NCBI GenBank assembly: GCA_950097015.1
Contig: CATNEN010000015.1
Coordinates: 1,426,001-1,490,000 of the forward strand
Source of the DNA: Macrostomum hystrix
Lineage: Eukaryota > Animalia > Platyhelminthes
Direction of reading: 5' to 3'
DNA length: 64,000 nt
Below are positions 2,016 to 21,807 of this stretch, one piece after another. Under the pieces are notes generated by a model that was given only the letters and a program-made list of their open reading frames with translations, made no database searches and was not told where the DNA came from. Made by a program: the position numbers and the translations under genes. The first letter of the stretch is position 1. Every line of letters begins with the position of its first letter.

Positions 2016-4970
2016 TCAGATCTTCAGCATCAGCCGCAGTTTACGAAGCGATACCCACTTTGAGCCTAAGTTAATCATCATAAACTCGTCACGTGTGTTC
2101 TCCTTCAGAGGAAATAGTCCGTTCGGGTTAAAAGTATGGCACCTGTTATACCACCAGCCACCGCGATCATACAAAAGCGAACAAAAACCGATAGCGTTGT
2201 CGTTGTCCTGGTCCATGGTGGAGAAGCGCATTCCTTTGTGGTACTCCATAGCATCGAATCCGACACTGGACCTGTTCCTCAGCATCTCTCGGTACGTCAT
2301 CTCATATTTGGTGCTGGCGTTTCCCACCTGGAATCCAGCATACTCAGCATGCAGCTCAGTCCCATTCCACAGCTTCATCTCCACTCTGAGTGTGGCTCCG
2401 CCTGCGCTCAGCGAGTGGATGGTGGAGAGACCTGCGGGTTGAGTTTGGCTGGTGATGTGAATACAGGCAAAATGCAAGAGCAGTTGACACGTACTATCTC
2501 TACGCAACTTTGTGCGACAGAACTTGTACTTTTTCACAGACAGCACGACTGGTACGTGTGCTTCTGTCTCTACGTGCTATTTGCTATTCCTGTGTCTTGG
2601 AGCTGAACCAAAAGAATATTTCAGACAGGACAACCATACTCAATTCCAACAGCAAGGCCGCACTACAGGTTATACCACTACTACTCCTCTGACAGACTCC
2701 AATAGATACCAGGGCATTCTGGTTTTCTGGAAATGAGCTTGTCGACTCGCTGGCAAAGCAGTGAGGCGCTAGCTCTGCGTTGGGTCCTGACCCACCAGCT
2801 CTCATCCTCAATACGTCAGTAATCGCCAGATTAATAACAGGCCGGCAAAAACCTCCATCACACGCGACGGAGGGACAACAAAAACTGCTGCCAGTCCAGA
2901 GCGGCAGTCCCGGTCCCATCCACCCGGCTCCGGAAGGTCCTCCTGAACCAAACCTCCTGAAGGACATCCGAGCCCTCACAATGACTTTCACAGGTCATGG
3001 CTGCTATGCCAGGCACTGCTTCCTCCGGGGAGACCTTCGGAACGAGGTGCGTCCATACTGTGTGTTTGAGAATGAGGATGCCCTGTACTTCGTCTGTCAC
3101 TGCCCTTTCTTTATTAGGGAGAGGCCTAACCTCCTTGGTCCGAACCCCTCCATGGATGCCGTTTGCAGATCCGAGAACATCTCGCGGCTCGTCCGGTTCC
3201 CGAGGGCTACCCGACGAGCATCGTTCTTCCCTAATGAGGAACACGCTGCAGGAAAGACCGGCCACGGACCTGCTTTGACTGGCTGCGCACCATTGGCTGA
3301 AGCGGTTTTTCAGGGATCAGTGGAATGTGCGACTGCCGCCTTCCCACTTAGTCTTCGGACCGCCCTACAGCTGAGTCAAGTAAGTGCCTAACTACTAAAT
3401 TGTAGTCCTTGATAGAAAAGGTGTTTCGCAAGCTCACCAATCCAGAAGCTGACGTTGTTTCCAAACCCAGACTCGTACTCCATCCAGTTCCGCTGGAAAC
3501 TGACATCTCCACTGAGTCGTTGTTGAATCGTTATGTATCTGCTTCCGTCAAGCATCAGAAAATCCTTCTTTGAGGAGTTTACTCCGACCCAGTCGGTGTC
3601 AAGCAGCCAATCACATGAAGCCTGGTTGGAACAGCTAAGTGGATTCTTAGTGAGCTCACTTTTGGACGAGAACATGTGCACCTGACTCTCCAGCAGGCAC
3701 TGGTTGGAAATCATCGAAGTTACCTGCCAGCGCACATCCCGCAGCAAGTCAGCTGGTTCGGCACTCAAAGACAATCTGAAGGTGTGAGAACTTGGATTTA
3801 TTGCACGAAAGCACATCAGCACGAGTATCTATAATATGTATAAAACTTAGATTTCCAACCTTAAACTGTCACAGCGATGAAAAGTATCGCAGTAAACTCT
3901 TAGATAAGTTGACTTGAAGTCCTCCAACACCTGCATTTTACCGAGCAAGAAGCGTGAACTCAAAGTCGAGCTCACAATGCTCTGAGCATTCCACAGACGC
4001 ATGAAGGCGATCGAGCGAGGCGATACATCAGCCAGCTGAGCCCTCACAGCCTCCAGGACTGTGTAATCTTGCAGCACTACATCCAGCCTGAGATAAAACT
4101 TCCTACTGCTGTTGTCATAAATTACTGACTCGCTGCTCAAGCTGCTGATGTTGTGGCAGAGAAGAGGCTCCACGAGGAATCCACCTGGCGTGTCCAGCAC
4201 CTGGTGAACTCGAGCCGTACAGGTGGAAGTGCTCACATTGCGAAAGAACTGCAGATGCTGGCAAAACGGCAGGTTCGTGTTCGCGTTGAGGAGCGATGCA
4301 TCTTCCGCTTGCATTACAATGCGATATCTCCTTTGCAGAGAGATCCGCTCTAGGTTTATGGTTGCTATTAGAACCACTCCACCCAGAACTTCCAGAGCAA
4401 AGTTTCTCATTCGAAACCTGAAGAGTCATGGAAATACTGAAACAAATATGTTGGCTCTTCTTACAAGACGAATTCGATAACTTACGCCAACGACAACGCG
4501 GCGCCATTGTCAGTGCACCAGAGTCTCAGGTCACCAACCGGCTCGCCCCAATTCCACACGAATTCAACAGATTTGAAATCAGAATTCTCCCGAGACGAGG
4601 CGCTGATTTCCGTCACGACCGCGAATTTCACCACCTTTGGTGACAGGTTTCTAAGGCGAAAATAAACTTCAGGTAGCAAGGCATCGTCCGTCAGCATCAC
4701 AGGAACACTGACGTACACCTGCTGCCTGATCAGATCGACTCTGGGAGTCAGGCTCTGCAGCTTGTCGGTGACGCACATTGCCGGCTCGATGGCGAAGTGC
4801 GAGCCGTTGCTCTCCACCGAGTGGTGCGCGAACAGCGGGCAGCCGCGCACCCGGAGCTGGGTGACGAAGTCCGAGCGAATGCACTGAGAGACCTGACCGG
4901 CTGCCAGCGAACATAGCAGCAGGGCCAATATGAAGGTGCAGATCAAAAGATTTGCTATTATATTTCTCAT
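2016..4970 (-). CDS. Secreted fibrinogen-related (FReD) protein, copy A, 4 exons, ~598 aa
   Basis: Exons 4970-4486, 4417-3860, 3775-3438 and 2431-2016 (485+558+338+416 = 1797 nt). All introns are GT-AG with matching phases 2,2,1. Hydrophobic leader MRNIIANLLICTFILALLLCSLAAG. Fibrinogen C-domain motifs IQQR..G.VSF.R.W.EY..GFG...FWIG|L, FST.DQDND and GGWWYN.C...NPNG. Confidence 0.88.
2590..3395 (+). mobile_element. Degenerate 3' fragment of an RNase H-containing non-LTR retrotransposon (I/Loa/R1-like) in intron 3 of FReD A
   Basis: Broken RNase H motifs NSNSKAALQ and Q*IPGHSG/GNELVDSLAKQ (~2640-2765), then TGHG and the C-terminal Zn-knuckle-like YCVFENEDALYFVCHCP in ORF 2780-3391. Contains stops and frameshifts; boundaries approximate. 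Confidence 0.75.
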
Positions 4971-7260
4971 TCTTGTCGTGGATTTCAAATCTAATAAAAT
5001 AAAAAGGCTAATTGCTTAAATTTGTTACTCACTAACATACCTTTCTACTGTTTCTGTAATTCACGATTATATATTAAACTTCGAAAGTCACTTGCTGGAA
5101 GCGACAAGTTTATGCACTGCAGATTCATTTTTAGTCATCACGAGATTTATTTGATCCAGCGACAATTTGTTCAAAATTCTGTCCGACTAGATATTTTGGT
5201 TGCGTTTGTATTAATAGAAATATTAACTTTCCACTGAATATCAGCTCGCTGACTAGCATGCTGATTTGTCTTCTATTTACTTCAGCTTTTAATTTTAAGG
5301 TACTTCGTACTTAATTTATCCCTGGCGAAATCAGTTTCTTTGTTTATTTCGGCAAATACTTATTTAGTACTTAGAGAAGACCATGAATAGCTGTCATGTG
5401 ATGCATTCACAGCATGGCTTCAAAGCGAGCCTTTACTGGACATCAGTACATACGCAATGGGCCGCTGAAGTGCTACCAGTGCCAGAGGTAATCTTATTTT
5501 TCGATGTTTTGCTTAGAGATGATGGTAGCGAAGCAGCAAAGGCTGCGCTGCCTCACCTGAGAAATAGTACTGAGAGGAAAGGCACTTGATGAGAATCTGG
5601 TTGATGAGAACCAACGCCACTGTGTTTACCCGCTTTCTCCCCGAGTTCGTTTAGGCCAGAAACCTTGTGGTGCCTAGTGGATATCTAAGACAACGTTTCA
5701 GCAAACATCTTTCCTTTTTGCGGTCCAAATAGACGTGTCACTCGTCTCGATTCTGCTCCGAAAACTGCAAGACAAGACCAAGGTTCGTTAGGTTCGTAAC
5801 ATTCGCCCCTGCTGCATTGAGGCTGACCACAGTCTTATTACTTGCGAAGTTGACCTTCGATGGACCAAATATAAAAAGTCTCCCGCGTCCCCCTATAGGC
5901 GAAATTCTGCTACTCGGGAAGCTTTTGTCTCAAAAGTTCTGAGCGCCGTTTCTGCATGGTCCTGAAACTTCTGCGAGACCTTCACTGCTGCTATTCAAGC
6001 TGCGGCCGACATCCTTCTCAGACACACAGCTAATAGACCAAAGGCCATCTGGGATGCGGATCCTGAAATTGCGCTCGCTTGACGACGAGTCCAAAGTGCC
6101 GCTGCTCGCGATGGTCCCGACAGCGAGCATGCTTTGGCCCTCCACAATGAATTTCAACGCATCTAGGCTGCCACAATCGAGAAGTACACCGAAGAAGCAG
6201 TGTCTGAAATTTAGGTCGCCTCTGACACGTGCAAGCATGCTGCTGCATGGCGTGCTATCAACAAGCAAGGACTACTTAAGTAGATACTACGGCTCGTACT
6301 ATATCACTACTATTGAGTATATAAATCTAATAATTCTTCAGTCGTCCTTGTCCACAAGGTGAGTCGGAGACCTAGACCTAGCGCAGTCGTTAGAGCTTCC
6401 TCTGTCGAAGAAAGAAAAGCCACTCTTGCTGCTCACTACCACAAAGTTCACCACGCTCCGCCTCCTGACACTGGACCTCTTCCGATTCTTGACTTCAATC
6501 CGTCTGCTCCAAGCAGTTTTAATACTGGGTCCATTTCTGCCACTGAAGTCCGTCAAGCATTGGCCACTACACACTCCGATGCCGCAGCTGGTGTTGACGA
6601 AATTCCTCCTCGGGTGCTCAAGCTCCCTGAGTTCTTGCACGTAATAACAAGCTTGCTTAATAAGCACACCATCCTTGGAGGAAACCTAGATGCTCACGCT
6701 CCAGGAAGACCAGGAAGATCTACTACCGAGCAGATCATCACCCTCCGCATCATCATCGAAGCCTTGGCTCGTCATAATGTTTATGACTCGGCTCGTCAAT
6801 CGTCGCTCATCCCAATCGTGTTTATAGACTTCCGGATGGCTTTTGACTCCTCGGTGGCGCGCTCGATTATCTCCTGGTTGCTGGCCCAGTACGGGGTTCC
6901 AGCTGCCCTGGTCACTGCTGTCACTGACCTTTTCATGGACCACGCGTGCCTTCGTCGAGACTCCTGACGGTCGAATATGTCACCTCATAAAGAGTTCTTC
7001 AATATGATATCTTGGCCCCATGTCTTTTTATCTTGTTCGTCGACTACATCCTGAGACGCGCAGGATGATGATGGCTTCATCATGACAACTCGTCGAGATC
7101 CGCGCCACCCTTCCGTCACCCTCGGTGCAATTGCTTTCGCTGACGACATCGCTCTTACCTGCAAGGACCCGTGTGCTGCTCAACGCGCCGTCACCAGACT
7201 TTTCGAAAAAGCCGCTCGAGTTGGCCTGGTGGTCAATGCCCGCAAAACCGAGGTTCTCTA
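4660..7260. repeat. Segmental duplication unit 1 (5' part of FReD exon 1, upstream region, RTE remnant); near-identical to ~13131-16500
   Basis: Identical ORFs recur at an offset of 8471 (5022/13493, 5383/13854, 5930/14401). The sequence matches by eye apart from indels inside the RTE remnant. Confidence 0.95.
5600..7260 (+). mobile_element. RTE-clade-like LINE remnant, copy 1 (end of AP endonuclease, linker, partial RT)
   Basis: Endonuclease end ...GPNRRVTRLD...IEADHSLITCEV. RT motifs GVDEIP, RSTTEQI..LR.IIE, IVFIDFR.AFDS, AFADDIAL and GLVVNARKTEV. Internal deletions, frameshifts, truncated at ~7260. Confidence 0.85.
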
Positions 7261-7665
7261 ACCGAGGGCTATATTGCTTCCCTCGCAAAATTAAAGGTGG
7301 AAATCTTGGAAACTAAATTCCACGCGAGAGTTACGCCAGCGCTAATGATGGCTTGTTCAGTCGGAGGCAAAAATGAGTTCTGCTCGGTATCGACTACGTT
7401 GAGAAGGCTTGCATCCGCACCAATGAGGAATGAGTTATACGATTAAATTCTGCACGTTTACTGCAACCAGTTACCTGTTTTTCATGTTCCACTACAATGT
7501 TTGCTTGTATATCGACTTATTGTAAGTCTATGGTCGAGGTCCGGTTACGAGCACTTTTTCGTTCATAACTTTTGTTTTCATGGTCAGTTTTAAAATGATG
7601 TTTGAGTTTATACGGCTCGTATAAATGTAGTATCCTTGCAAATATCGAACACTGCAGAGGCTCCG

Positions 7666-7990
7666 TGTAGTAGAGTTATAGTTGAAAAGGATGTGCGCCG
7701 ATAGCAAGCACTCGGCAGTAGATTTGCTTGAAGCGTGTATTTGTAGTAGTCTGGGCTAGCAATAATAGGTGGAGGACCCCAAAGGAGTTTTGGTTATGAC
7801 TGCGCGTGGAGTTTCTATTTATAGGCGGGAGCGCGAGTGGGGGAACTTTCCAGAAGGATACCATACATGACACACGCGCACACGAGAGAAGGGTCGAGAA
7901 GATTCTGGAATAAACAAATGAACTCACGCATTATAACAAATGAGGGAAGTTTCTAGAAACTTCCAGAATAATTGCACGAGCGCCATCACA
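7666..7990 (-). repeat. 3' LTR of the Gypsy element (~325 bp)
   Basis: On the minus strand the purine tract GGTGGGGAGG (8000-7991) is followed directly by TGTGATG... and the unit ends ...CTACTACA at 7666 (TG...CA termini). TATA-like TATAAATAG inside. Confidence 0.75.
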
Positions 7991-10070
7991 CCTCCCCACC
8001 AAGCTGTGAGTGCAGCTGACAGAAAAGGAAAGGTCTATAAGTCCATTCGTAGCCGAGGCTTACGCTGTCTCACCGAGCGTCTGGGGTTGTCCGGTCCGAA
8101 AGGTGGTGGCTGAACATGTCCTTGCTCCCGCCGGCCAGGAGACGGAGGCGCCGCCAGCGGTCTGGCCGGTAACACCTGGTGACCGGCCGTTTCGTTTAGC
8201 TGAACCGGCAGCGATCCTGGTTCGCTGTCTTCCATTGACGCGTGTCGTGGTTGCAGCTGGTCGAAGTGCCGCCGCCAGACCGGGCCGTTCGAGACCACCT
8301 TGACGTTAACGCTGCGGCTACCATGCCGCTTGGTGACCACCGCGGGAACCCAGCGGCCTTCCTTCTCGCGGCGTGGTCCGTAGTAGCGCGCATAGACCGC
8401 ATCTCCGACGTTGAACCCTTCTCGGATGCGAGACACCTCTTGACGAGCTCTGGACGCCTCGGCCTGCTTGGCTTGGCGATCCTGGGCGAGATGGGCCGGC
8501 GATGGTAGCAGCGTATCGATCTGCGTCCGGTTCTGCCGGCCGTTGAGGAGTTCACTCGGAGAGTAGCCATTTACTGCCGGAGTCCGTCGGTACTGCATCA
8601 GGAATTGTTGTAGAGCCCTGGCAGGTGGCAGGCTGGATTTCCTCAGGGCCTTCTTTAAGGTCTGAACCAGCTGTTCAGCCGCTCCATTCGTTGCCGGGTG
8701 ATACGGAGCTCCGGTGAGGTGCGCGCTGCGCGCTGGTGTTCGCGACACCATGCTTGGAATTCCTCGGCCATGAATGCCGCTGCGTTGTCCGTGACGACGG
8801 CATGAGGGTAGCCGAAGTGGGCGAAGTCTTCTTCTAGAAGCTCGATCGTAGCCCGAGTTGACATGGATTGCGTCAGGTGTATGCACGGATACTTCGAGTA
8901 GGCGTCCGTAAGCACAAGCCAGTTGGTGCCGAGGAAGTTGACTGCGTGGTCTAGATGTAGGCGACTCCAAGGTTTCTCAGGCATCATCCACGGATGAACG
9001 GCGGCCTTTGGCGGCTGATTTTGGTGCTCGGCGCAGCTGTGGCAGCCGCGGCATAGGTGTTCGACGTCGTCGTCGATGTTCGGCCAATAGACTGCCGATC
9101 GGGCCAGCTGCTTCATCCTCTGCATTCCGAAATGTCCGAGGTGGAGAATTTTCAGCACGTCATTTCGGAGGTTCCGTGGAATTACAAGGCGACAGCCATG
9201 CAGAAGGCATCCGTTGCAGCAGGACAGCGAGTTTTTGACTTTCCGCAGGCGGGCCAGCTCAGCGTCCTCGTCTCGTCCGATTGGCGGCCAACCTTCTCGA
9301 CAGTAGCGCATGGCGGTGGAGATGACTGGGTCCCTCGATGATTCCTTGGCTACGGCTGAGGCGTCAGCCGGCCGGATCTGCAGGCTCAGGACCTTGATCG
9401 CACAGACCATGTCGAAATCGGCTGTGCTCTCCTCCCCGTCGAAGTCTGGGTCGTCTCCGACTGGCAGGCGACTCAGGGCGTCCGCATTTCCGTGACTCTT
9501 CGTCTGGCGGTACTCGATTTCGTAGGTGAAATTGTGGAGCAGGTTCGCCGAACGAGCCAGTCGGTTTGCTGCCATCACAGGTGTCTCCTTTTCGGGCCCA
9601 AGTAGCGAAATCAACGGCTTATGGTCCGTGACCAGGATGAACTTTCGGTTAAACAAGTATTGGAAGAACTTCTTTAAGCCGAAGATGATTGAAAGCGCTT
9701 CCTTCTGAATCTGTGGATAGCGGCGCTGAGCATCCGTCAGAGACTTTGAAGCGTTGGCGATCGGCCGCTCGCTACCATCCGGGTAGCGGTGGAACAGGAC
9801 AGCGCCTATCCCGACGTTTGATGCATCGCAGGAGAGCCCGAGAGGGAGCTCAGGCCTGTAGTGGACAAGTACGTTGTCCGAAGAGAGCTCCTGCTTGATC
9901 CAGTCGAAGGCCCGCTGCTCCGCGTCTCCCCAAATCCATGGTGTGTCCTTCCTGGTGAGGCGGTACAGCGGCTCGGAGATGGTGGCCATGCTCGGTGGCA
10001 AAAACTTTGCGTAGAACTGGACCGAACCGAGGAATGACCGGAGGCTGGACACGTCCTTTGGTGGAGGCAT
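7666..10070 (-). mobile_element. 5'-truncated Ty3/Gypsy LTR retrotransposon (RT connection, RNase H, integrase, PPT, 3' LTR)
   Basis: ORF 8655-10070 has LRSFLG..QFYAKF, RNase H LSCDAS..GIGAVL...EKEAL...TDHKPL, integrase HHCC (H..H...C..C) and core LDHA/TDNA. ORF 8035-8970 continues (PYHPATNGAAEQ) after a frameshift near 8745. The RT-RH-IN order is Gypsy-type. Confidence 0.93.
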
Positions 10071-10411
10071 TACGAGTAAATCACTTTTTGGACCATCAGA
10101 ATAAAAGATATGATAAAAATAAAGACTACCTTTGGGCCATCCCTTGTTGTCTATATGCTGCTCGTAGTTCTAACATAGATTAAAACGCGATTTAAATCGA
10201 AGGTAATTAGTTGCATCTATTACCTTTGTCTTGCGATGTAAGAAACCTGCATGCGAAACCATTGAGCAAACATTTATTAAGCGCTTAAAGTGATCAACTG
10301 AAGTCATCACAACATTCTTTTTTATTTATCATTTAGTGCACAAATATATAATTTGCAATGTTTAATCGGATGGGCTGTAGCAAATCAACAGTGCAATCAA
10401 TTAGTTGTCTA

Positions 10412-10894
10412 AGTGTTCCTGTGATGCTGACGGACGATGCCTTGCTACCTGAAGTTTATTTTCGCCTTAGAAACCTGTCACCAAAGGTGGTGAAATTCGC
10501 GGCCGTGACGGAAATCAGCGCCTCGTCTCGGGAGAATTCTGATTTCAATTCTGTTGAATTCGTGTGGAGACCGGGAGAGTCCATTGGGCACCTGAGACTG
10601 TGGTTCAGCGACTTTGATTCGGCCTTCTTACTAGCGTGAGTTTGCGCTGAAAACATTCGTCATTCGCACATCAGCTCTGGTAAGATTATGACGCTACCTC
10701 GATATTTTTTTTATTTTTAGGTCTCAGACAAGTACTGGTCCCATGAAGGAATTCAATCAAGTGGCACTTTCTGCATCAATCACTCTGGGCAAGAGAGTTA
10801 TGAAAATGAAATACAAGCTGGTGATGCGCAGAGAAGGTGCTCAGGAATCGAGCTTGCGAGCTGACAGCGACACAGACCTGCCATTGTGCCGACA
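10412..10894 (+). pseudogene. Inverted internal fragment of a FReD gene (3' half of exon 1, intron 1, start of exon 2)
   Basis: Encodes SVPVMLTDDALLPEVYFRLRNLSPKVVKF...WRPGESIGHLRLWF, then an intact GTGAG...TTTAG intron, then SQTSTGPMKEFNQ...LPLCR. No start codon and no fibrinogen domain. Confidence 0.9.
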
Positions 10895-11158
10895 TTGATT
10901 GAGTTGTCTTAGATTTGGCATGGCAAATTTACATAAATATATTTTCATTCCTTTATAAAGTTTTGAATCAGAAAGCAGGAACGTGAATAACGAATCGTAT
11001 TCTATTCTATATTTTCTTGACTATATAATGGAGGCTTCAGTATAGTCTCAGTCGATAGATTGATTAAAAATATTAACACGAAAAACCCTTTCAATGCGTC
11101 AAAAAGACAAACACCCTAAGTTCGTTATGCTCAACTCTAAAATAATTTTCATGTCTGT

Positions 11159-13441
11159 TCACATCTGCAGCAGCATTCGCATTTCACGAAGGTTGATCGG
11201 CGTAACATCCTCCCACCAAGTCATGTGGGAATAATCATGATAGTATATATCCTCATAAGGATACAGTCCGTTAGGATTAAAGTACAAGCAATTGTTGAAC
11301 CACCAGCCACCCGACCCACGATTTTGTGAACACGAATAATTTGGAGACCAATCATTGTCGCTGTCCATAGTAGAGAAGCGCATTCCTCTGTGGTTCGCCA
11401 TGGCATCGTATCCGACAGTGGACCTGTCCCACAGCATCTCTCGGTACGTCATCTCATATTTGGTGCTGGCGTTTCCCACCTGGAATCCAGCATACTCAGC
11501 ATGCAGCTCAGTCCCATTCCACAGCTTCATCTCCACTCTGAGTGTGGCACCGCCTGAGCACAGCGAGTGGATGGCGGAGAGACCTGCGGAAGTTTTACGA
11601 AGTTCGTTTGCTACATCACTGCTATAGCTATGCGAATAATCAGTTTTTTGATAAATTATGAAACCAAGATAATATGTACTCTAAGCCAACGCAACTTTCA
11701 TTCAAAGTGCCCTGAAACAAAATGCTGTAGTGCCTTGTGCATTCTGGAAGTTTTGCACGAAAATGGTGACATCAGTTGGTAAATAAAGTCAAACATCATA
11801 ACGTCGATAAGGCATACGCTTATTCTGAAATACAACTACCAGGCGAAGCATTGTATCCCAGTAACTCACCAATCCAAAAGTTCTCTTCGTTTCCGAATCC
11901 AGATTCATAATCTTCCCAACTACGACGAAAATCAACGCTCCCATAAATTCTTTGTTGTATAGCAACAAATATTTTGTTTGCGGCAGTGACAACCAGTCCT
12001 CTGTGCAATATTTTCAGCCGTGCGATGCTAAGAAGCCTCTCGTATGAAGATCTCATGGAACTGCGGAGATAAACATCGTTTTCGTCAGTCTTCCAGGAAG
12101 AAGGAATTTCGTCAGACTTCAGCAGACAAAGATCGGGCAGCGCTGAAGTCAGCTGCCACTTCACGTGACGCCAGAAGTCAGCTGGCACAGCCCGCAAGAT
12201 AAATCTGTTGATACAAAAGTGGAGCATCATTATGAATTAAAAATGCTTTTCTAATGCAAAGTAGACTTTCGTTATAACAATGTAAACAACCACACCTACT
12301 TCATGATTTGGCACTGTTTCAAGGCTCGACAAGACAGCCTTACATGGGCGGATCTCCCATCCGAAGACACATTTAAAGGGCCAATCGAGATTCTAGGACT
12401 AAAGACAGGCCTTATTATGCTCTGAGCACTCCGAAATTTCATAAAGGTGACTGAGCCAGGTGCCAGATCAGCTAGCTGAGATCTGACAGCATCTAGTGTT
12501 GCGCTGTCTTCGAGTATAAACTCCAGCTCAAGATAAAACATTCCGCGGCTGCTGTCATACATGACAGGTTGGCTGCTCAGGCTGATGATGTTGTGACAGA
12601 GCAGCGGCTCGATGAGGAAGTGACTCGGGGCATCACGTCTCTGGTTCACGCGGACCGAGCAGCTGGCGACTGTGACAATTCGAACGAGTTCAAGTTGTCG
12701 GCACAATGGCAGGTCTGTGTCGCTGTCAGCTCGCAAGCTCGATTCCTGAGCACCTTCTCTGCGCATCACCAGCTTGTATTTCATTTTCATAACTCTCTTG
12801 CCCAGAGTGATTGATGCAGAAAGTGCCACTTGATTGAATTCCTTCATGGGACCAGTACTTGTCTGAGACCTAAAAATAAATAAAAAAGATCGAGGTAGCG
12901 TCATAATCTTACCAGAGCTGATGTGCGAATGACGAATGTTTTCAGCGCAAACTCACGCTAGTAAGAAGGCCGAATAAAAGTCGTTGAACCACAGTCTCAG
13001 GTGCCCAATGGACTCTCCCGGTCTCCAAACGAATTCGGCGGATTCGAACACTTGGTTTCCTCCGATGGAGGCTTTGATGTCCGTCACAATTGCGAAGTTG
13101 ACATGCTTCGGTGAAACGCTTCTGAGCCGGAAATAAACTTCAGGTAGCAAAGTATCGTCCGTCAGCATCACAGGAACACTGACGTACACCTGCTGCCTGA
13201 TCAGATCGACTCTGGGAGTCAGGCTCTGCAGCTTGTCGGTGACGCACATTGCCGGCTCGATGGCGAAGTGCGAGCCGTTGCTCTCCACCGAGTGGTGCGC
13301 GAACAGCGGGCAGCCGCGCACCCGGAGCTGGGTGACGAAGTCCGAGCGAATGCACTGAGAGACCTGACCGGCTGCCAGCGAACATAGCAGCAGGGCCAAT
13401 ATGAAGGTGCAGATCAAAAGATTTGCTATTATATTTCTCAT
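11159..13441 (-). CDS. Secreted fibrinogen-related (FReD) protein, copy B, 4 exons, ~604 aa
   Basis: Exons 13441-12957, 12869-12300, 12204-11870 and 11583-11159 (485+570+335+425 = 1815 nt). GT-AG introns in phases 2,2,1; same fibrinogen motifs as copy A. Confidence 0.9.
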
Positions 13442-18154: not shown

Positions 18155-21100
18155 TCACATCTGCAGCAGCATTCGCATTTCACGAAGGTTAATCGGCGTA
18201 ACATCTTCCCACCAAGTCATGTAAGAATAATCCTCATAGCGTTTATCCTCATAAGGATACAGTCCGTTAGGATTAAAGTACAAGCAACCGTTGAACCACC
18301 AGCCACCCGACCCACGATTTTGTGAACACGAATAATTTAGAGTCCTATCATTGTCGCTGTCCATAGTAGAGAAGCGCATTCCTCTGTGGCTCGCCATGGC
18401 ATCGTATCTGACAGTGGACCTGTCCCACAGCATCTCTCGGTACGTCATCTCATATTTGGTGCTGGCGTTTCCCACCTGGAATCCAGCATACTCAGCATGC
18501 AGCTCAGTCCCATTCCACAGCTTCATCTCCACTCTGAGTGTGGCACCGCCTGCGCTCAGCGAGTGGATGGCGGAGAGACCTGCGGAAGTTTTACGAAGTT
18601 CGTTTGCTACATCTCTGCTATACTACGGGTGTCATAAGTAATGTCACTGCGGTTGTTGTGCGGGAACCCAAAGCAATTATCATCCAAATATATTATATTC
18701 TTCTGAAAGTACATTTATTGAGAAGTTGCCACCACACCTGAGCAGCAATTTTAATGTCTATGGCCAAAACTGTCGCAAGAATTTGTTAATCAGATTTAGC
18801 AAGCGCAACGCGATGAAATCTTATTTTTGCAACGAGCAAAACTCAACATGAATCACGACAAGACGCACATCCAGTTCTACGCTTTCATTCGCTTCAAGCT
18901 TGGAAAATCTGCACTTGAAGTAGAGGAGGATCTCCGGAACACACTGCCAGACAACTGCCCAACTCGCAGGACAATTTACAGGTGGTTTCAGAACTTTACT
19001 GATCCTGGGTTCTAATTGGGAGATGCCGCCAGATCTGGACGACCATGTTCAACCAGGACAATAGAGAACATCGAAGTCATCAGCGACCTGGTCAAAGAAG
19101 ATCCGCGGCAGTCTGTCAGGGAGCTAGCGGACTGCTTGGAGATTGATTTCAAGACAGTCCATCGCATCTTGACAGAGGATCTCCATCTCCGAAACGTCTG
19201 CTCGGTCTGGGTGCCCCATGACCTCACTGCGGACCAACGTCAGGCCCGTGTGAACTGCGCCAATCAGATCCGCAAGGTGTTTAGCAGCCGGGGCTTGGAT
19301 GACATCCTAAACTGCCTGGTTGTTGAGGATGAGACCTGGCTCCACCTGGATGGCAAAAGCAGCAAGGCAGACAATCGCTGCTGGCTGGGAGCTCGGGACT
19401 CCAGGCTGACTGTGACCAGGAGGTCCATCTCAGACAAGAAGACGATGCTGCTGGTGGCATTCACGCCAAACAAACGAGTCTCCATCTGTACAACTCCGCC
19501 AAACACCAAGGTCGATGGCCAGTACTTCATCGACTTTGTCCGACACACTGGGAACCTCTGGCGCACGCTCCGGTCAAACCCGATTCACCTGAACGAAGTT
19601 CTGTGGCAGATGGACAACGCACGGCCCCACACCTGTCAGGCTGTTTCGGATTTTCTGGCTGGACGGCGAGTAAATCTGCTCTGGCAGAGTCCCTACAGCC
19701 CAGACTTCAACTTGTGCGACAGTTTTCTCTTTAAATGGCTGAAGGCAGACTTTTCCCAGAGAAGTTTCGCAAACCATGATGAGGTCAAAGAAGACGCGTT
19801 GCACTGGTTCCGACAGCTGGAGGAAAAACACCTACAGGCTGAGGTAGAGAAGCTGTACGAGCACTGTCAGAGGGTGATTGATATTGGGGGACACTATGTT
19901 GTTGATTGATACAGTTTCGTTCATCTGCGATTGTTAGTTGGTCTGTTTTACCCTCAGTGACAATACTTATGACACACCCGAAGTAGCTATGCGAATAATC
20001 AGTTTTTTGATAAATTGTGAAACCAAGATAATATGTACTCTAAGCCAACGCAACTTTCATTCAAAGTGCCCTGAAACAAAATGCTGTAGTGCCTTGTGCA
20101 TTCTGGAAGAATGTTTTGCAGGAAAATGCTGACATCAGTTGTTAAATAAAGTCAAACATCATAATGTCGATAAGGCATACGCTTATTCTGAAATACAACT
20201 ACCAGGCGAAGCATTGTATCCCAGTAACTCACCAATCCAAAAGTTCTCTTCGTTTCCGAATCCAGATTCATAATCTTCCCAACTACGACGAAAATCAACG
20301 CTCCTATTAATTCTTTGTTGTATAGCAACAAATATTTTGTTTGCGGCAGTGACAACCAGTCCTCTGTGCAATATTTTCAGCCGTGCGATGCTAAGAAGCC
20401 TGTCGCATGAAGATCTCATGGAACAGCTGAGATAAACATCGTTTTCGTCAGTCTTCCAGGAAGAAGAAATTTCGTCAGACTTCAGCAGACAAAGATCGGG
20501 CAGCACTGAAGTCAGCTGCCACTTCACGTGACGCCAGAAGTCAGCTGGCACAGCCCGCAAGATAAATCTGTTGATACACAAGTGGAGCATCATTATGAAT
20601 TAAAAATGCTTTTCTAATGCAAAGTAGACTTTCGTTATAACAATGTAAACAACCACACCTACTTTATGATTTGGCACTGTTTCAAGGCTCGACAAGACAG
20701 CCTTACATGGGCGGATCTCCCATCCGAAGACACATTTAAAGGGCCAATCGAGATTCTAGGACTAAAGACAGGTCTTATTATGCTCTGAGCACTCCGAAAT
20801 TTCATAAAGGTGACTGAGCCAGGTGCCAGATCAGCTAGCTGAGATCTGACAGCATCTAGTGTTGCGCTGTCTTCCAGTATAAACTCCAGCTCAAGATAAA
20901 ACATTCCGCGGCTGCTGTCATACATGACAGGTTGGCTGCTCAGGCTGATGATGTTGTGGCAGAGCAGCAGCTCGATGAGGAAGTGACTCGGGGCATCACG
21001 TCTCTGGTTCACGCGGACCGAGCAACTGGCGACTGTGACAATTCGAACGAGTTCAAGTTGTCGGCACAATGGCAGGTTTGTGTCGCTGTCAGCACTTAAG

Positions 21101-21807
21101 CTCGATTCCTGAGCACCTTCTCTGCGCATCACCAGCTTGTATTTCATTTTCATAACTCTCTTGCGCAGAGTGATTGATGCAGAAAGTGCCACTTGATTGA
21201 ATGCCTTCATGGGACCAGTACTTGTCTGAGACCTGAAAATAAATAAAAAATATCGAGGTAGCGTCATAATCTTACCAGAGCTGATGTGCGAATGACCAAT
21301 GTTTTCAGCGCAAACTCACGCTAGTAAGAAGGCCGAATAAAAGTCGTTGAACCACAGTCTCAGGTGTCCAATGGACTCTCCCGTTCTCCAAACGAATTCG
21401 GCGGATTCGAACACTTGGTTTCCTCCGATGGAGGCTTTGATGTCCGTCACAATTGCGAAGTTGACATGCTTCGGTGAAACGCTTCTGAGCCGGAAATAAA
21501 CTTCAGGTAGCAAAGTATCGTCCGTCAGCATCACAGGAACACTGACGTACACCTGCTGCCTGATCAGATCGACTCTGGGAGTCAGGCTCTGCAGCTTGTC
21601 GGTGACGCACATTGCCGGCTCGATGGCGAAGTGCGAGCCGTTGCTCTCCACCGAGTGGTGCGCGAACAGCGGGCAGCCGCGCACCCGGAGCTGGGTGACG
21701 AAGTCCGAGCGAATGCACTGAGAGACCTGACCGGCTGCCAGCGAGCAGAACAGCAGGGCCGGCACGTAGCTGAGAATGAGAGTGACTGCCTGAAGTCGCA
21801 TTGTCAT
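18155..21807 (-). CDS. Secreted fibrinogen-related (FReD) protein, copy C, 4 exons, ~605 aa; mariner in intron 3
   Basis: Exons 21807-21320, 21232-20663, 20567-20233 and 18579-18155, all in frame. Body close to copy B (offset 8363 for exons 2-3), but with a different leader MTMRLQAVTLILSYVPALLFCSLAAG. Confidence 0.9.
18623..19983 (+). mobile_element. Full-length mariner (DD34D) transposon with one in-frame stop in the transposase
   Basis: TA TSD at 18621-22 and 19984-85; the empty site GCTATAGCTA is in copy B at 11621-30. TIRs of ~28 bp, CT(A/T)CGGGTGT(GT)CATAAGTA(A/T)TGTCACTG. Transposase 18848-19909 with WVPH, DETW, DNARPH-34 aa-D and YSPD; TAA at 19013-15. Confidence 0.96.

Follow-up and report, generated by a model that had tools for sequence, protein, structure and literature searches.

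A repeated cysteine-containing module, so far seen only in Macrostomum flatworms, precedes fibrinogen-related and C-type lectin domains

We analysed a stretch of 64,000 nucleotides of the genome of the flatworm Macrostomum hystrix (contig CATNEN010000015.1, positions 1,426,001 to 1,490,000), hereafter the window, in which all coordinates are given unless another locus is named. The minus strand of this 64-kb window carries three intact tandem genes, A (2016-4970), B (11159-13441) and C (18155-21807), that have a common architecture: a signal peptide, a first copy of a cysteine-containing domain (repeat 1), a linker, a second copy (repeat 2), a short neck and a fibrinogen-related domain (FReD). 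Each product is predicted to be a secreted protein of about 600 residues (598 in the case of gene A), and none of the three proteins contains a transmembrane stretch. The exon models, including those of B and C, were built by homology to proteins of Macrostomum lignano and by inspection of splice sites; all three are in frame, with a single terminal stop and GT-AG introns throughout. The closest proteins to the cluster products are from M. lignano, with 55-60% identity.

Gene A comprises four exons, separated in the model by introns of 68, 84 and 1,006 nt. Exon 1 (4970-4486; donor GTAAGT, phase 2) encodes a 25-residue signal peptide (4896-4970), read from the open reading frame (ORF), and the 137-residue core of repeat 1 (4485-4895). 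The signal peptide ends right before the mature N-terminus QVSQC, a start that also follows the hydrophobic leaders of M. lignano proteins. Exon 2 (4417-3860) encodes a 48-residue linker (4273-4417) and the 138-residue core of repeat 2 (3859-4272), and its phase is 2 at both ends, such that the linker and repeat could be duplicated or moved together as an exon. The linker has a pattern, L.A.I.L ... Y.[IL]VM, that is conserved in the paralogue alignment and is matched in paralogues by positions 1-45 of the repeat 2 hidden Markov model (HMM), although a structural model of the tandem is of low confidence there. The neck (AEPADLL.DV.WQVTS...C; 3637-3775), which has weak to moderate statistical support, and the first part of the FReD (3438-3636; PF00147, E = 6.4e-8) share exon 3 (3775-3438), and the remaining FReD and the stop codon lie in exon 4 (2431-2016; PF00147, E = 6.9e-27, 95 bits against a cut-off of 22). 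The first 38 or so positions of PF00147 are unmatched in gene A, which marks the A sub-domain of the FReD as divergent. In the exon models of the other two genes, the cores of repeats 1 and 2 lie at 12956-13366 and 12299-12712 (gene B) and at 21319-21729 and 20662-21075 (gene C), all on the minus strand.

This layout bears out a first-pass annotation made from the sequence by eye, which had placed two copies of an unassigned domain of about 130 residues at 3860-4900, ahead of a fibrinogen domain: the interval corresponds to exons 1 and 2 of gene A on the minus strand, and the fibrinogen domain is the one matched in the last exon. The motif proposed for the domain, C-x13-C-x12/13-HF.IEP..C-x19/20-Y with a later LR..C, is present with the spacing described, both in repeat 1 of gene A and in repeat 2 of gene B.

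The two repeats are clearly homologous, as judged by several sequence comparisons, despite sharing only 21-25% identity, a level suggesting that their duplication is old. Within the window, a tblastn search with exon 1 of gene A matched exon 2 of gene B (E = 8.7e-4), and alignment of the two repeats as three-sequence profiles with hhalign gave E = 5.4e-5 across 88 columns. The repeat 2 HMM detected repeat 1 of paralogues in the same genome with E values down to 5e-13 (5e-8 in the reverse search), and in M. lignano proteins each repeat's HMM detected the other at 1e-9 to 1e-12. Both repeats lie within one uninterrupted ORF in three paralogues (L011, L013 and L014), and an AlphaFold2 model of one of these tandems (L011) gives both repeats the same order of strands and helices. 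This two-repeat model is of low confidence (predicted local distance difference test (pLDDT) score of 53) and was built with separate alignment columns per repeat, and we used it for secondary-structure order only.

The module has a core of about 135 residues, or about 190 with the linker. Across 45 repeats, an E-P dipeptide (E35, P36) occurs in 98%, and the cysteines that surround it, C2 and C3, are both present in 37 and both absent in 7, with 1 discordant. For C4 and C5, in the LR..C.....C tail, the corresponding counts are 32, 10 and 3, and the two pairs vary independently of one another. This co-occurrence points to two disulfides within the module, one joining C2 and C3 on either side of the E-P motif and one joining C4 and C5 in the tail. 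Cysteine 1, including the one in the invariant QVSQC, has no constant partner inside the core, and the mature protein of gene C has an odd number of cysteines. Together these features make free cysteines, available for links between chains, a plausible reading of the sequences.

Substitution patterns indicate that the module is under constraint, with a ratio of non-synonymous to synonymous rates (dN/dS) of 0.15-0.5. Between genes A and B the synonymous rate (dS) is saturated, and dN/dS comes to 0.26 in repeat 2 and to 0.19 in the C-terminal half of repeat 1; pooled pairs of paralogues gave 0.3-0.5. Genes B and C form a young pair, 97-98% identical, that differs by 4 synonymous and 2 non-synonymous changes in repeat 2, as opposed to 3 synonymous and 20 non-synonymous changes (dN/dS of 1.8) in the FReD, for which exon 4 lies at 11159-11583 in B and 18155-18579 in C. 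The direction of these data suggests constraint on the repeats and change in the recognition head. We also observed that genes A and B are mosaic. The segment encoding the signal peptide and the first 75 residues of repeat 1 (4671-4970 in A and 13142-13441 in B, minus strand) has 2 differences in 300 bases and dS exceeds 1.5 outside it, with a second near-identical block inside the FReD (alignment columns 481-520). This pattern looks like gene conversion or recombination between paralogues.

To assess how widespread the module is, we searched the 220-Mb M. hystrix genome with a profile of both repeats and found 66 module matches on at least 10 contigs. The window repeats were matched at E = 2.6e-50 and 3.7e-45, partly by construction as the profile included their sequences. 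The genes bearing the module number about 30, and a FReD profile found at least 161 exon-level matches in the same genome, suggesting that most FReD genes of this worm have another N-terminal partner or none. When 1.84 billion cluster representatives were searched exhaustively with HMMER, 20 proteins reached E <= 1e-3. Every named protein matched over the whole domain was from M. lignano, and the others came from Logan or JGI metagenome contigs. As seen so far in these searches, the module is therefore restricted to Macrostomum flatworms, the kind of lineage-restricted distribution that the first-pass annotation had put forward as a sign of novelty. A search of the literature on Macrostomum fibrinogen proteins and flatworm FReD lectins found no description of the family.

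The partial matches, in bacterial proteins and in the sponge Sycon ciliatum, cover 25-45 residues and lie inside repeats. We rejected the Sycon protein (P0032/P0058) as a homologue as it matches short pieces and not the whole domain. It is a low-complexity protein, rich in Ser, Thr and Gln, in which a 12-residue string, HF..EPLMCSTR, occurs five times, and its likeness to the most conserved part of the module is probably a coincidence. Clostridial surface proteins (P0033-35), in which a hairpin-like motif of 30 residues is repeated, were also rejected, the match again being partial. Elsewhere in M. hystrix, one locus (L033, C11:2845000-2854999) encodes a signal peptide and a single, very divergent module (5209-5685 of that locus, plus strand), and no FReD occurs within 5 kb of it. 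In the ORF that comes next (6690-7664), a stretch containing E-P-N looks lectin-like by eye; the ORF has no Pfam match.

The FReD is one of two types of head found behind the module. In the M. lignano proteins P0021, P0037 and P0038 (1,285-1,438 residues) and in P0020 (1,462 residues), a C-type lectin domain (PF00059, E = 1e-9 to 1e-11) stands behind five to six repeats. P0020 is encoded by an intron-free ORF on a 4,758-nt contig, whereas the equivalent M. hystrix locus (L031, on contig C34) is split into many ORFs that end in one matching Lectin_C (E = 1e-9), suggesting that the P0020 contig represents a spliced transcript. At this locus (G000:C34:6654000-6663999, minus strand), at least five copies of the module lie at 4471-9998, followed by a neck ORF at 3274-3624 and the C-type lectin ORF at 2347-2727, and the parts are separated by long, low-complexity tandem repeats that are open in several frames. 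Forms with one repeat and a FReD also occur (P0025 and the M. hystrix locus L034). In genes A, B and C, as in the FReD and C-type lectin proteins of M. lignano, the module is preceded by a signal peptide and followed by a lectin-type head at the C-terminus.

Between the last repeat and either type of head lies a neck of about 20 residues, [ED]-P-x-D-[LYF]-[LW]...V-[TS]-S...C, which resembles the beginning of several linkers between repeats. In each of the four lectin proteins a neck HMM gave its best match at the expected site, and of 10 inner linkers, 4 scored above the 99th percentile of shuffled sequences; BLASTP of the neck against the C-type lectin protein returned no alignment. These results give weak to moderate support for a neck common to the two head types.

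AlphaFold2 modelled repeat 2 of gene A, from an alignment of 32 sequences, with a pLDDT of 89.5 and a predicted template-modelling score (pTM) of 0.77. The predicted fold is mixed alpha/beta. It begins with two long strands and a short one; a short helix, two more strands, a second helix and one further strand come next, and after a long loop a last strand is followed by the terminal helix. Searches by shape returned only uncharacterised counterparts: the best match in the ESM Atlas was to a Bacteroidota cluster (template-modelling score (TM) of 0.58), and the best Foldseek match in the viral database BFVD was to a Medusavirus protein (TM of 0.64, E = 1.4e-2). A feature search of the ESM Atlas with repeats 1 and 2 gave no usable match. 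A homodimer prediction for repeat 2, run without an alignment, gave a score of 0.05 that carries no weight for or against a dimer.

It is quite unlikely, in our assessment, that the module belongs, as a highly diverged member, to a known family or fold, such as SEA-like or another two-layer alpha/beta sandwich, and so new in sequence only. Against Pfam, the 45 repeats had no match beyond scattered ones at E > 0.02, with each family seen in at most two members. A profile search of PDB sequences found nothing significant (best E of 0.74), and Foldseek against PDB structures found nothing at E <= 1e-3. These searches agree with the first-pass annotation, which by eye had found none of the usual FReD partners: there was no immunoglobulin, EGF or FN3 match, and genes A, B and C contain no collagen-like run of four or more G-x-x triplets. 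The annotation's tentative suggestion of a SEA or ferredoxin-like domain was not supported. The SEA profile (PF01390) had no match at E <= 1 in the exons or in any of the 45 repeats, no SEA chain was among the fold matches, and the predicted structure did not conform to a ferredoxin-like sandwich. A G/SVVV-type autoproteolysis motif is found in many, not all, SEA domains, and none of proteins A, B and C contains the pattern GS[VI]V[VI].

Could the repeats instead be no real domain, their similarity having arisen through recent duplication, gene conversion or non-coding repeats within decaying pseudogenes? The cluster is partly mosaic, with the first 100 codons of A and B almost identical in DNA, and it includes an inverted, truncated fragment (10352-10895, plus strand; detected by tblastn and HMM) that holds the C-terminal half of a repeat 1 together with the beginning of the linker and is most likely a dead partial copy. 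In addition, a search for RNA sequencing runs of this genome listed none. Such an origin is nevertheless extremely improbable for the module as a whole. The three genes have intact frames and canonical splice sites, dN/dS is well below 1 where dS is saturated, and M. lignano has orthologous gene models that are 55-60% identical. Furthermore, an intron-free contig of 4.7 kb encodes six repeats and a lectin domain, the model of the fold is confident and consistent, and repeats that are only 21-25% identical must stem from an old duplication.

Mobile elements have also left traces in the cluster. A 297-residue ORF on the plus strand (19016-19909) with a DDE_3 transposase domain (E = 2e-9) and a Tc3-type helix-turn-helix lies inside intron 3 of gene C, which is 1,653 nt long compared with 286 nt in gene B. 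Reverse transcriptase fragments on the plus strand between genes A and B (6359-7261; RVT_1, E = 2.4e-7 for the ORF at 7082-7261) suggest a decayed retroelement.

On balance, we lean towards the view that the module is a genus-restricted extracellular scaffold or stalk that presents lectin heads, a reading we hold to be somewhat more probable than its alternatives combined. One, two or five to six modules would follow the signal peptide in a string and lead up to a carbohydrate-recognition head (a FReD or a C-type lectin domain), which they would space and present. Chains may be linked via the cysteines without an internal partner, for example that of QVSQC, and the heads would bind sugars. Several observations weigh against such a role or make its basis less firm. 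Shared ancestry inflates the counts of co-occurring cysteines; the fold comes from one AlphaFold2 model based on 32 related sequences, and the two-repeat model is poor; and the pooled dN/dS of 0.3-0.5 reflects only moderate constraint, from pairs that are not independent. The contrast between B and C consists of few substitutions in a single gene pair, and splicing and expression of the three genes were deduced from gene models in M. lignano together with a single transcript-like contig from a related gene. Finally, A and B share only 25-60% identity in repeat 2 and in the C-terminal half of repeat 1, a divergence for which a pure spacer has no need.

That divergence would suit a module that is itself a binding domain, providing a second recognition surface or a docking site for an effector or cell receptor, and not mainly a spacer. 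For a purely structural domain, a dN/dS in the observed range is relaxed; the family is large and has expanded in tandem; and QVSQC and HF.IEP, which are candidates for surface motifs, are strictly conserved across paralogues and species. We consider this reading somewhat unlikely, however, given that the non-synonymous excess of the youngest pair falls in the FReD and not in the repeats, that one to six copies in front of two unrelated head types are typical of stalk modules, and that no ligand-binding family or fold was matched.

Under the scaffold reading, the family is of interest in several respects. A recognition head on an oligomerising stalk is a recurring design in animal innate immunity, seen in collectins, ficolins, snail fibrinogen-related proteins (FREPs) and tachylectins. 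The same design would here occur in a genus of regenerating model flatworms, its stalk domain being unnamed in databases and having a predicted shape without a clear solved counterpart. To structural biology, the stalk domain offers a candidate for a new domain family and perhaps a new fold. The phase-2 boundaries of the exon for repeat 2, which comprises linker and core, also make the family a clear example of an invented domain that was then shuffled, as an exon, between lectin heads. For functional tests in immunity or mucus, M. lignano offers a defined gene family, with at least 30 fibrinogen-type genes in addition to the multi-repeat C-type lectin genes. If the module is only a lineage-specific spacer, the result is a useful annotation and a modest finding. 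New in our analysis are the placement of the module ahead of a C-type lectin domain, two putative disulfides and the apparent contrast in substitutions between stalk and head.

Among known systems, the SEA domain (PF01390) resembles the Macrostomum module in size (about 120-135 residues), in its extracellular location, in its mixture of strands and helices and in often standing beside other extracellular modules. The two differ in that the module has neither the HMM match nor the autoproteolysis motif, and has conserved disulfides that SEA lacks. Gastropod FREPs, such as those of Biomphalaria with one or two immunoglobulin superfamily (IgSF) domains and a FReD, likewise place one or two globular domains N-terminal to the FReD and form a large, tandemly expanded, lineage-specific family with signs of FReD diversification. 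In snail FREPs, the IgSF domains are regarded as a second surface for recognition. Unlike these domains, the module has no immunoglobulin match in Pfam, either in exons 1 and 2 or in the 45 repeats, and its predicted fold contains helices and is mixed alpha/beta.

A further parallel is with the ficolins and collectins of vertebrates and ascidians, secreted proteins in which a signal peptide and an N-terminal cysteine segment are likewise followed by a stalk and a short neck and, at the C-terminus, by a FReD (ficolins) or a C-type lectin domain (collectins). The collagen stalk of ficolins docks MASPs. A bolder version of the scaffold reading, which we regard as unlikely, is that a new fold arose in macrostomid flatworms as a general lectin stalk, a globular, disulfide-linked equivalent of the collagen one, that oligomerises FReD and C-type heads and is coupled to a flatworm-specific effector, for example opsonisation by thioester proteins, amounting to an independently invented lectin pathway architecture. 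The Macrostomum stalk would differ from that of ficolins and collectins in that its building blocks are not collagen but globular modules, each about 135 residues long and present in 1, 2 or 5-6 copies; in both cases, one type of stalk serves both types of head.
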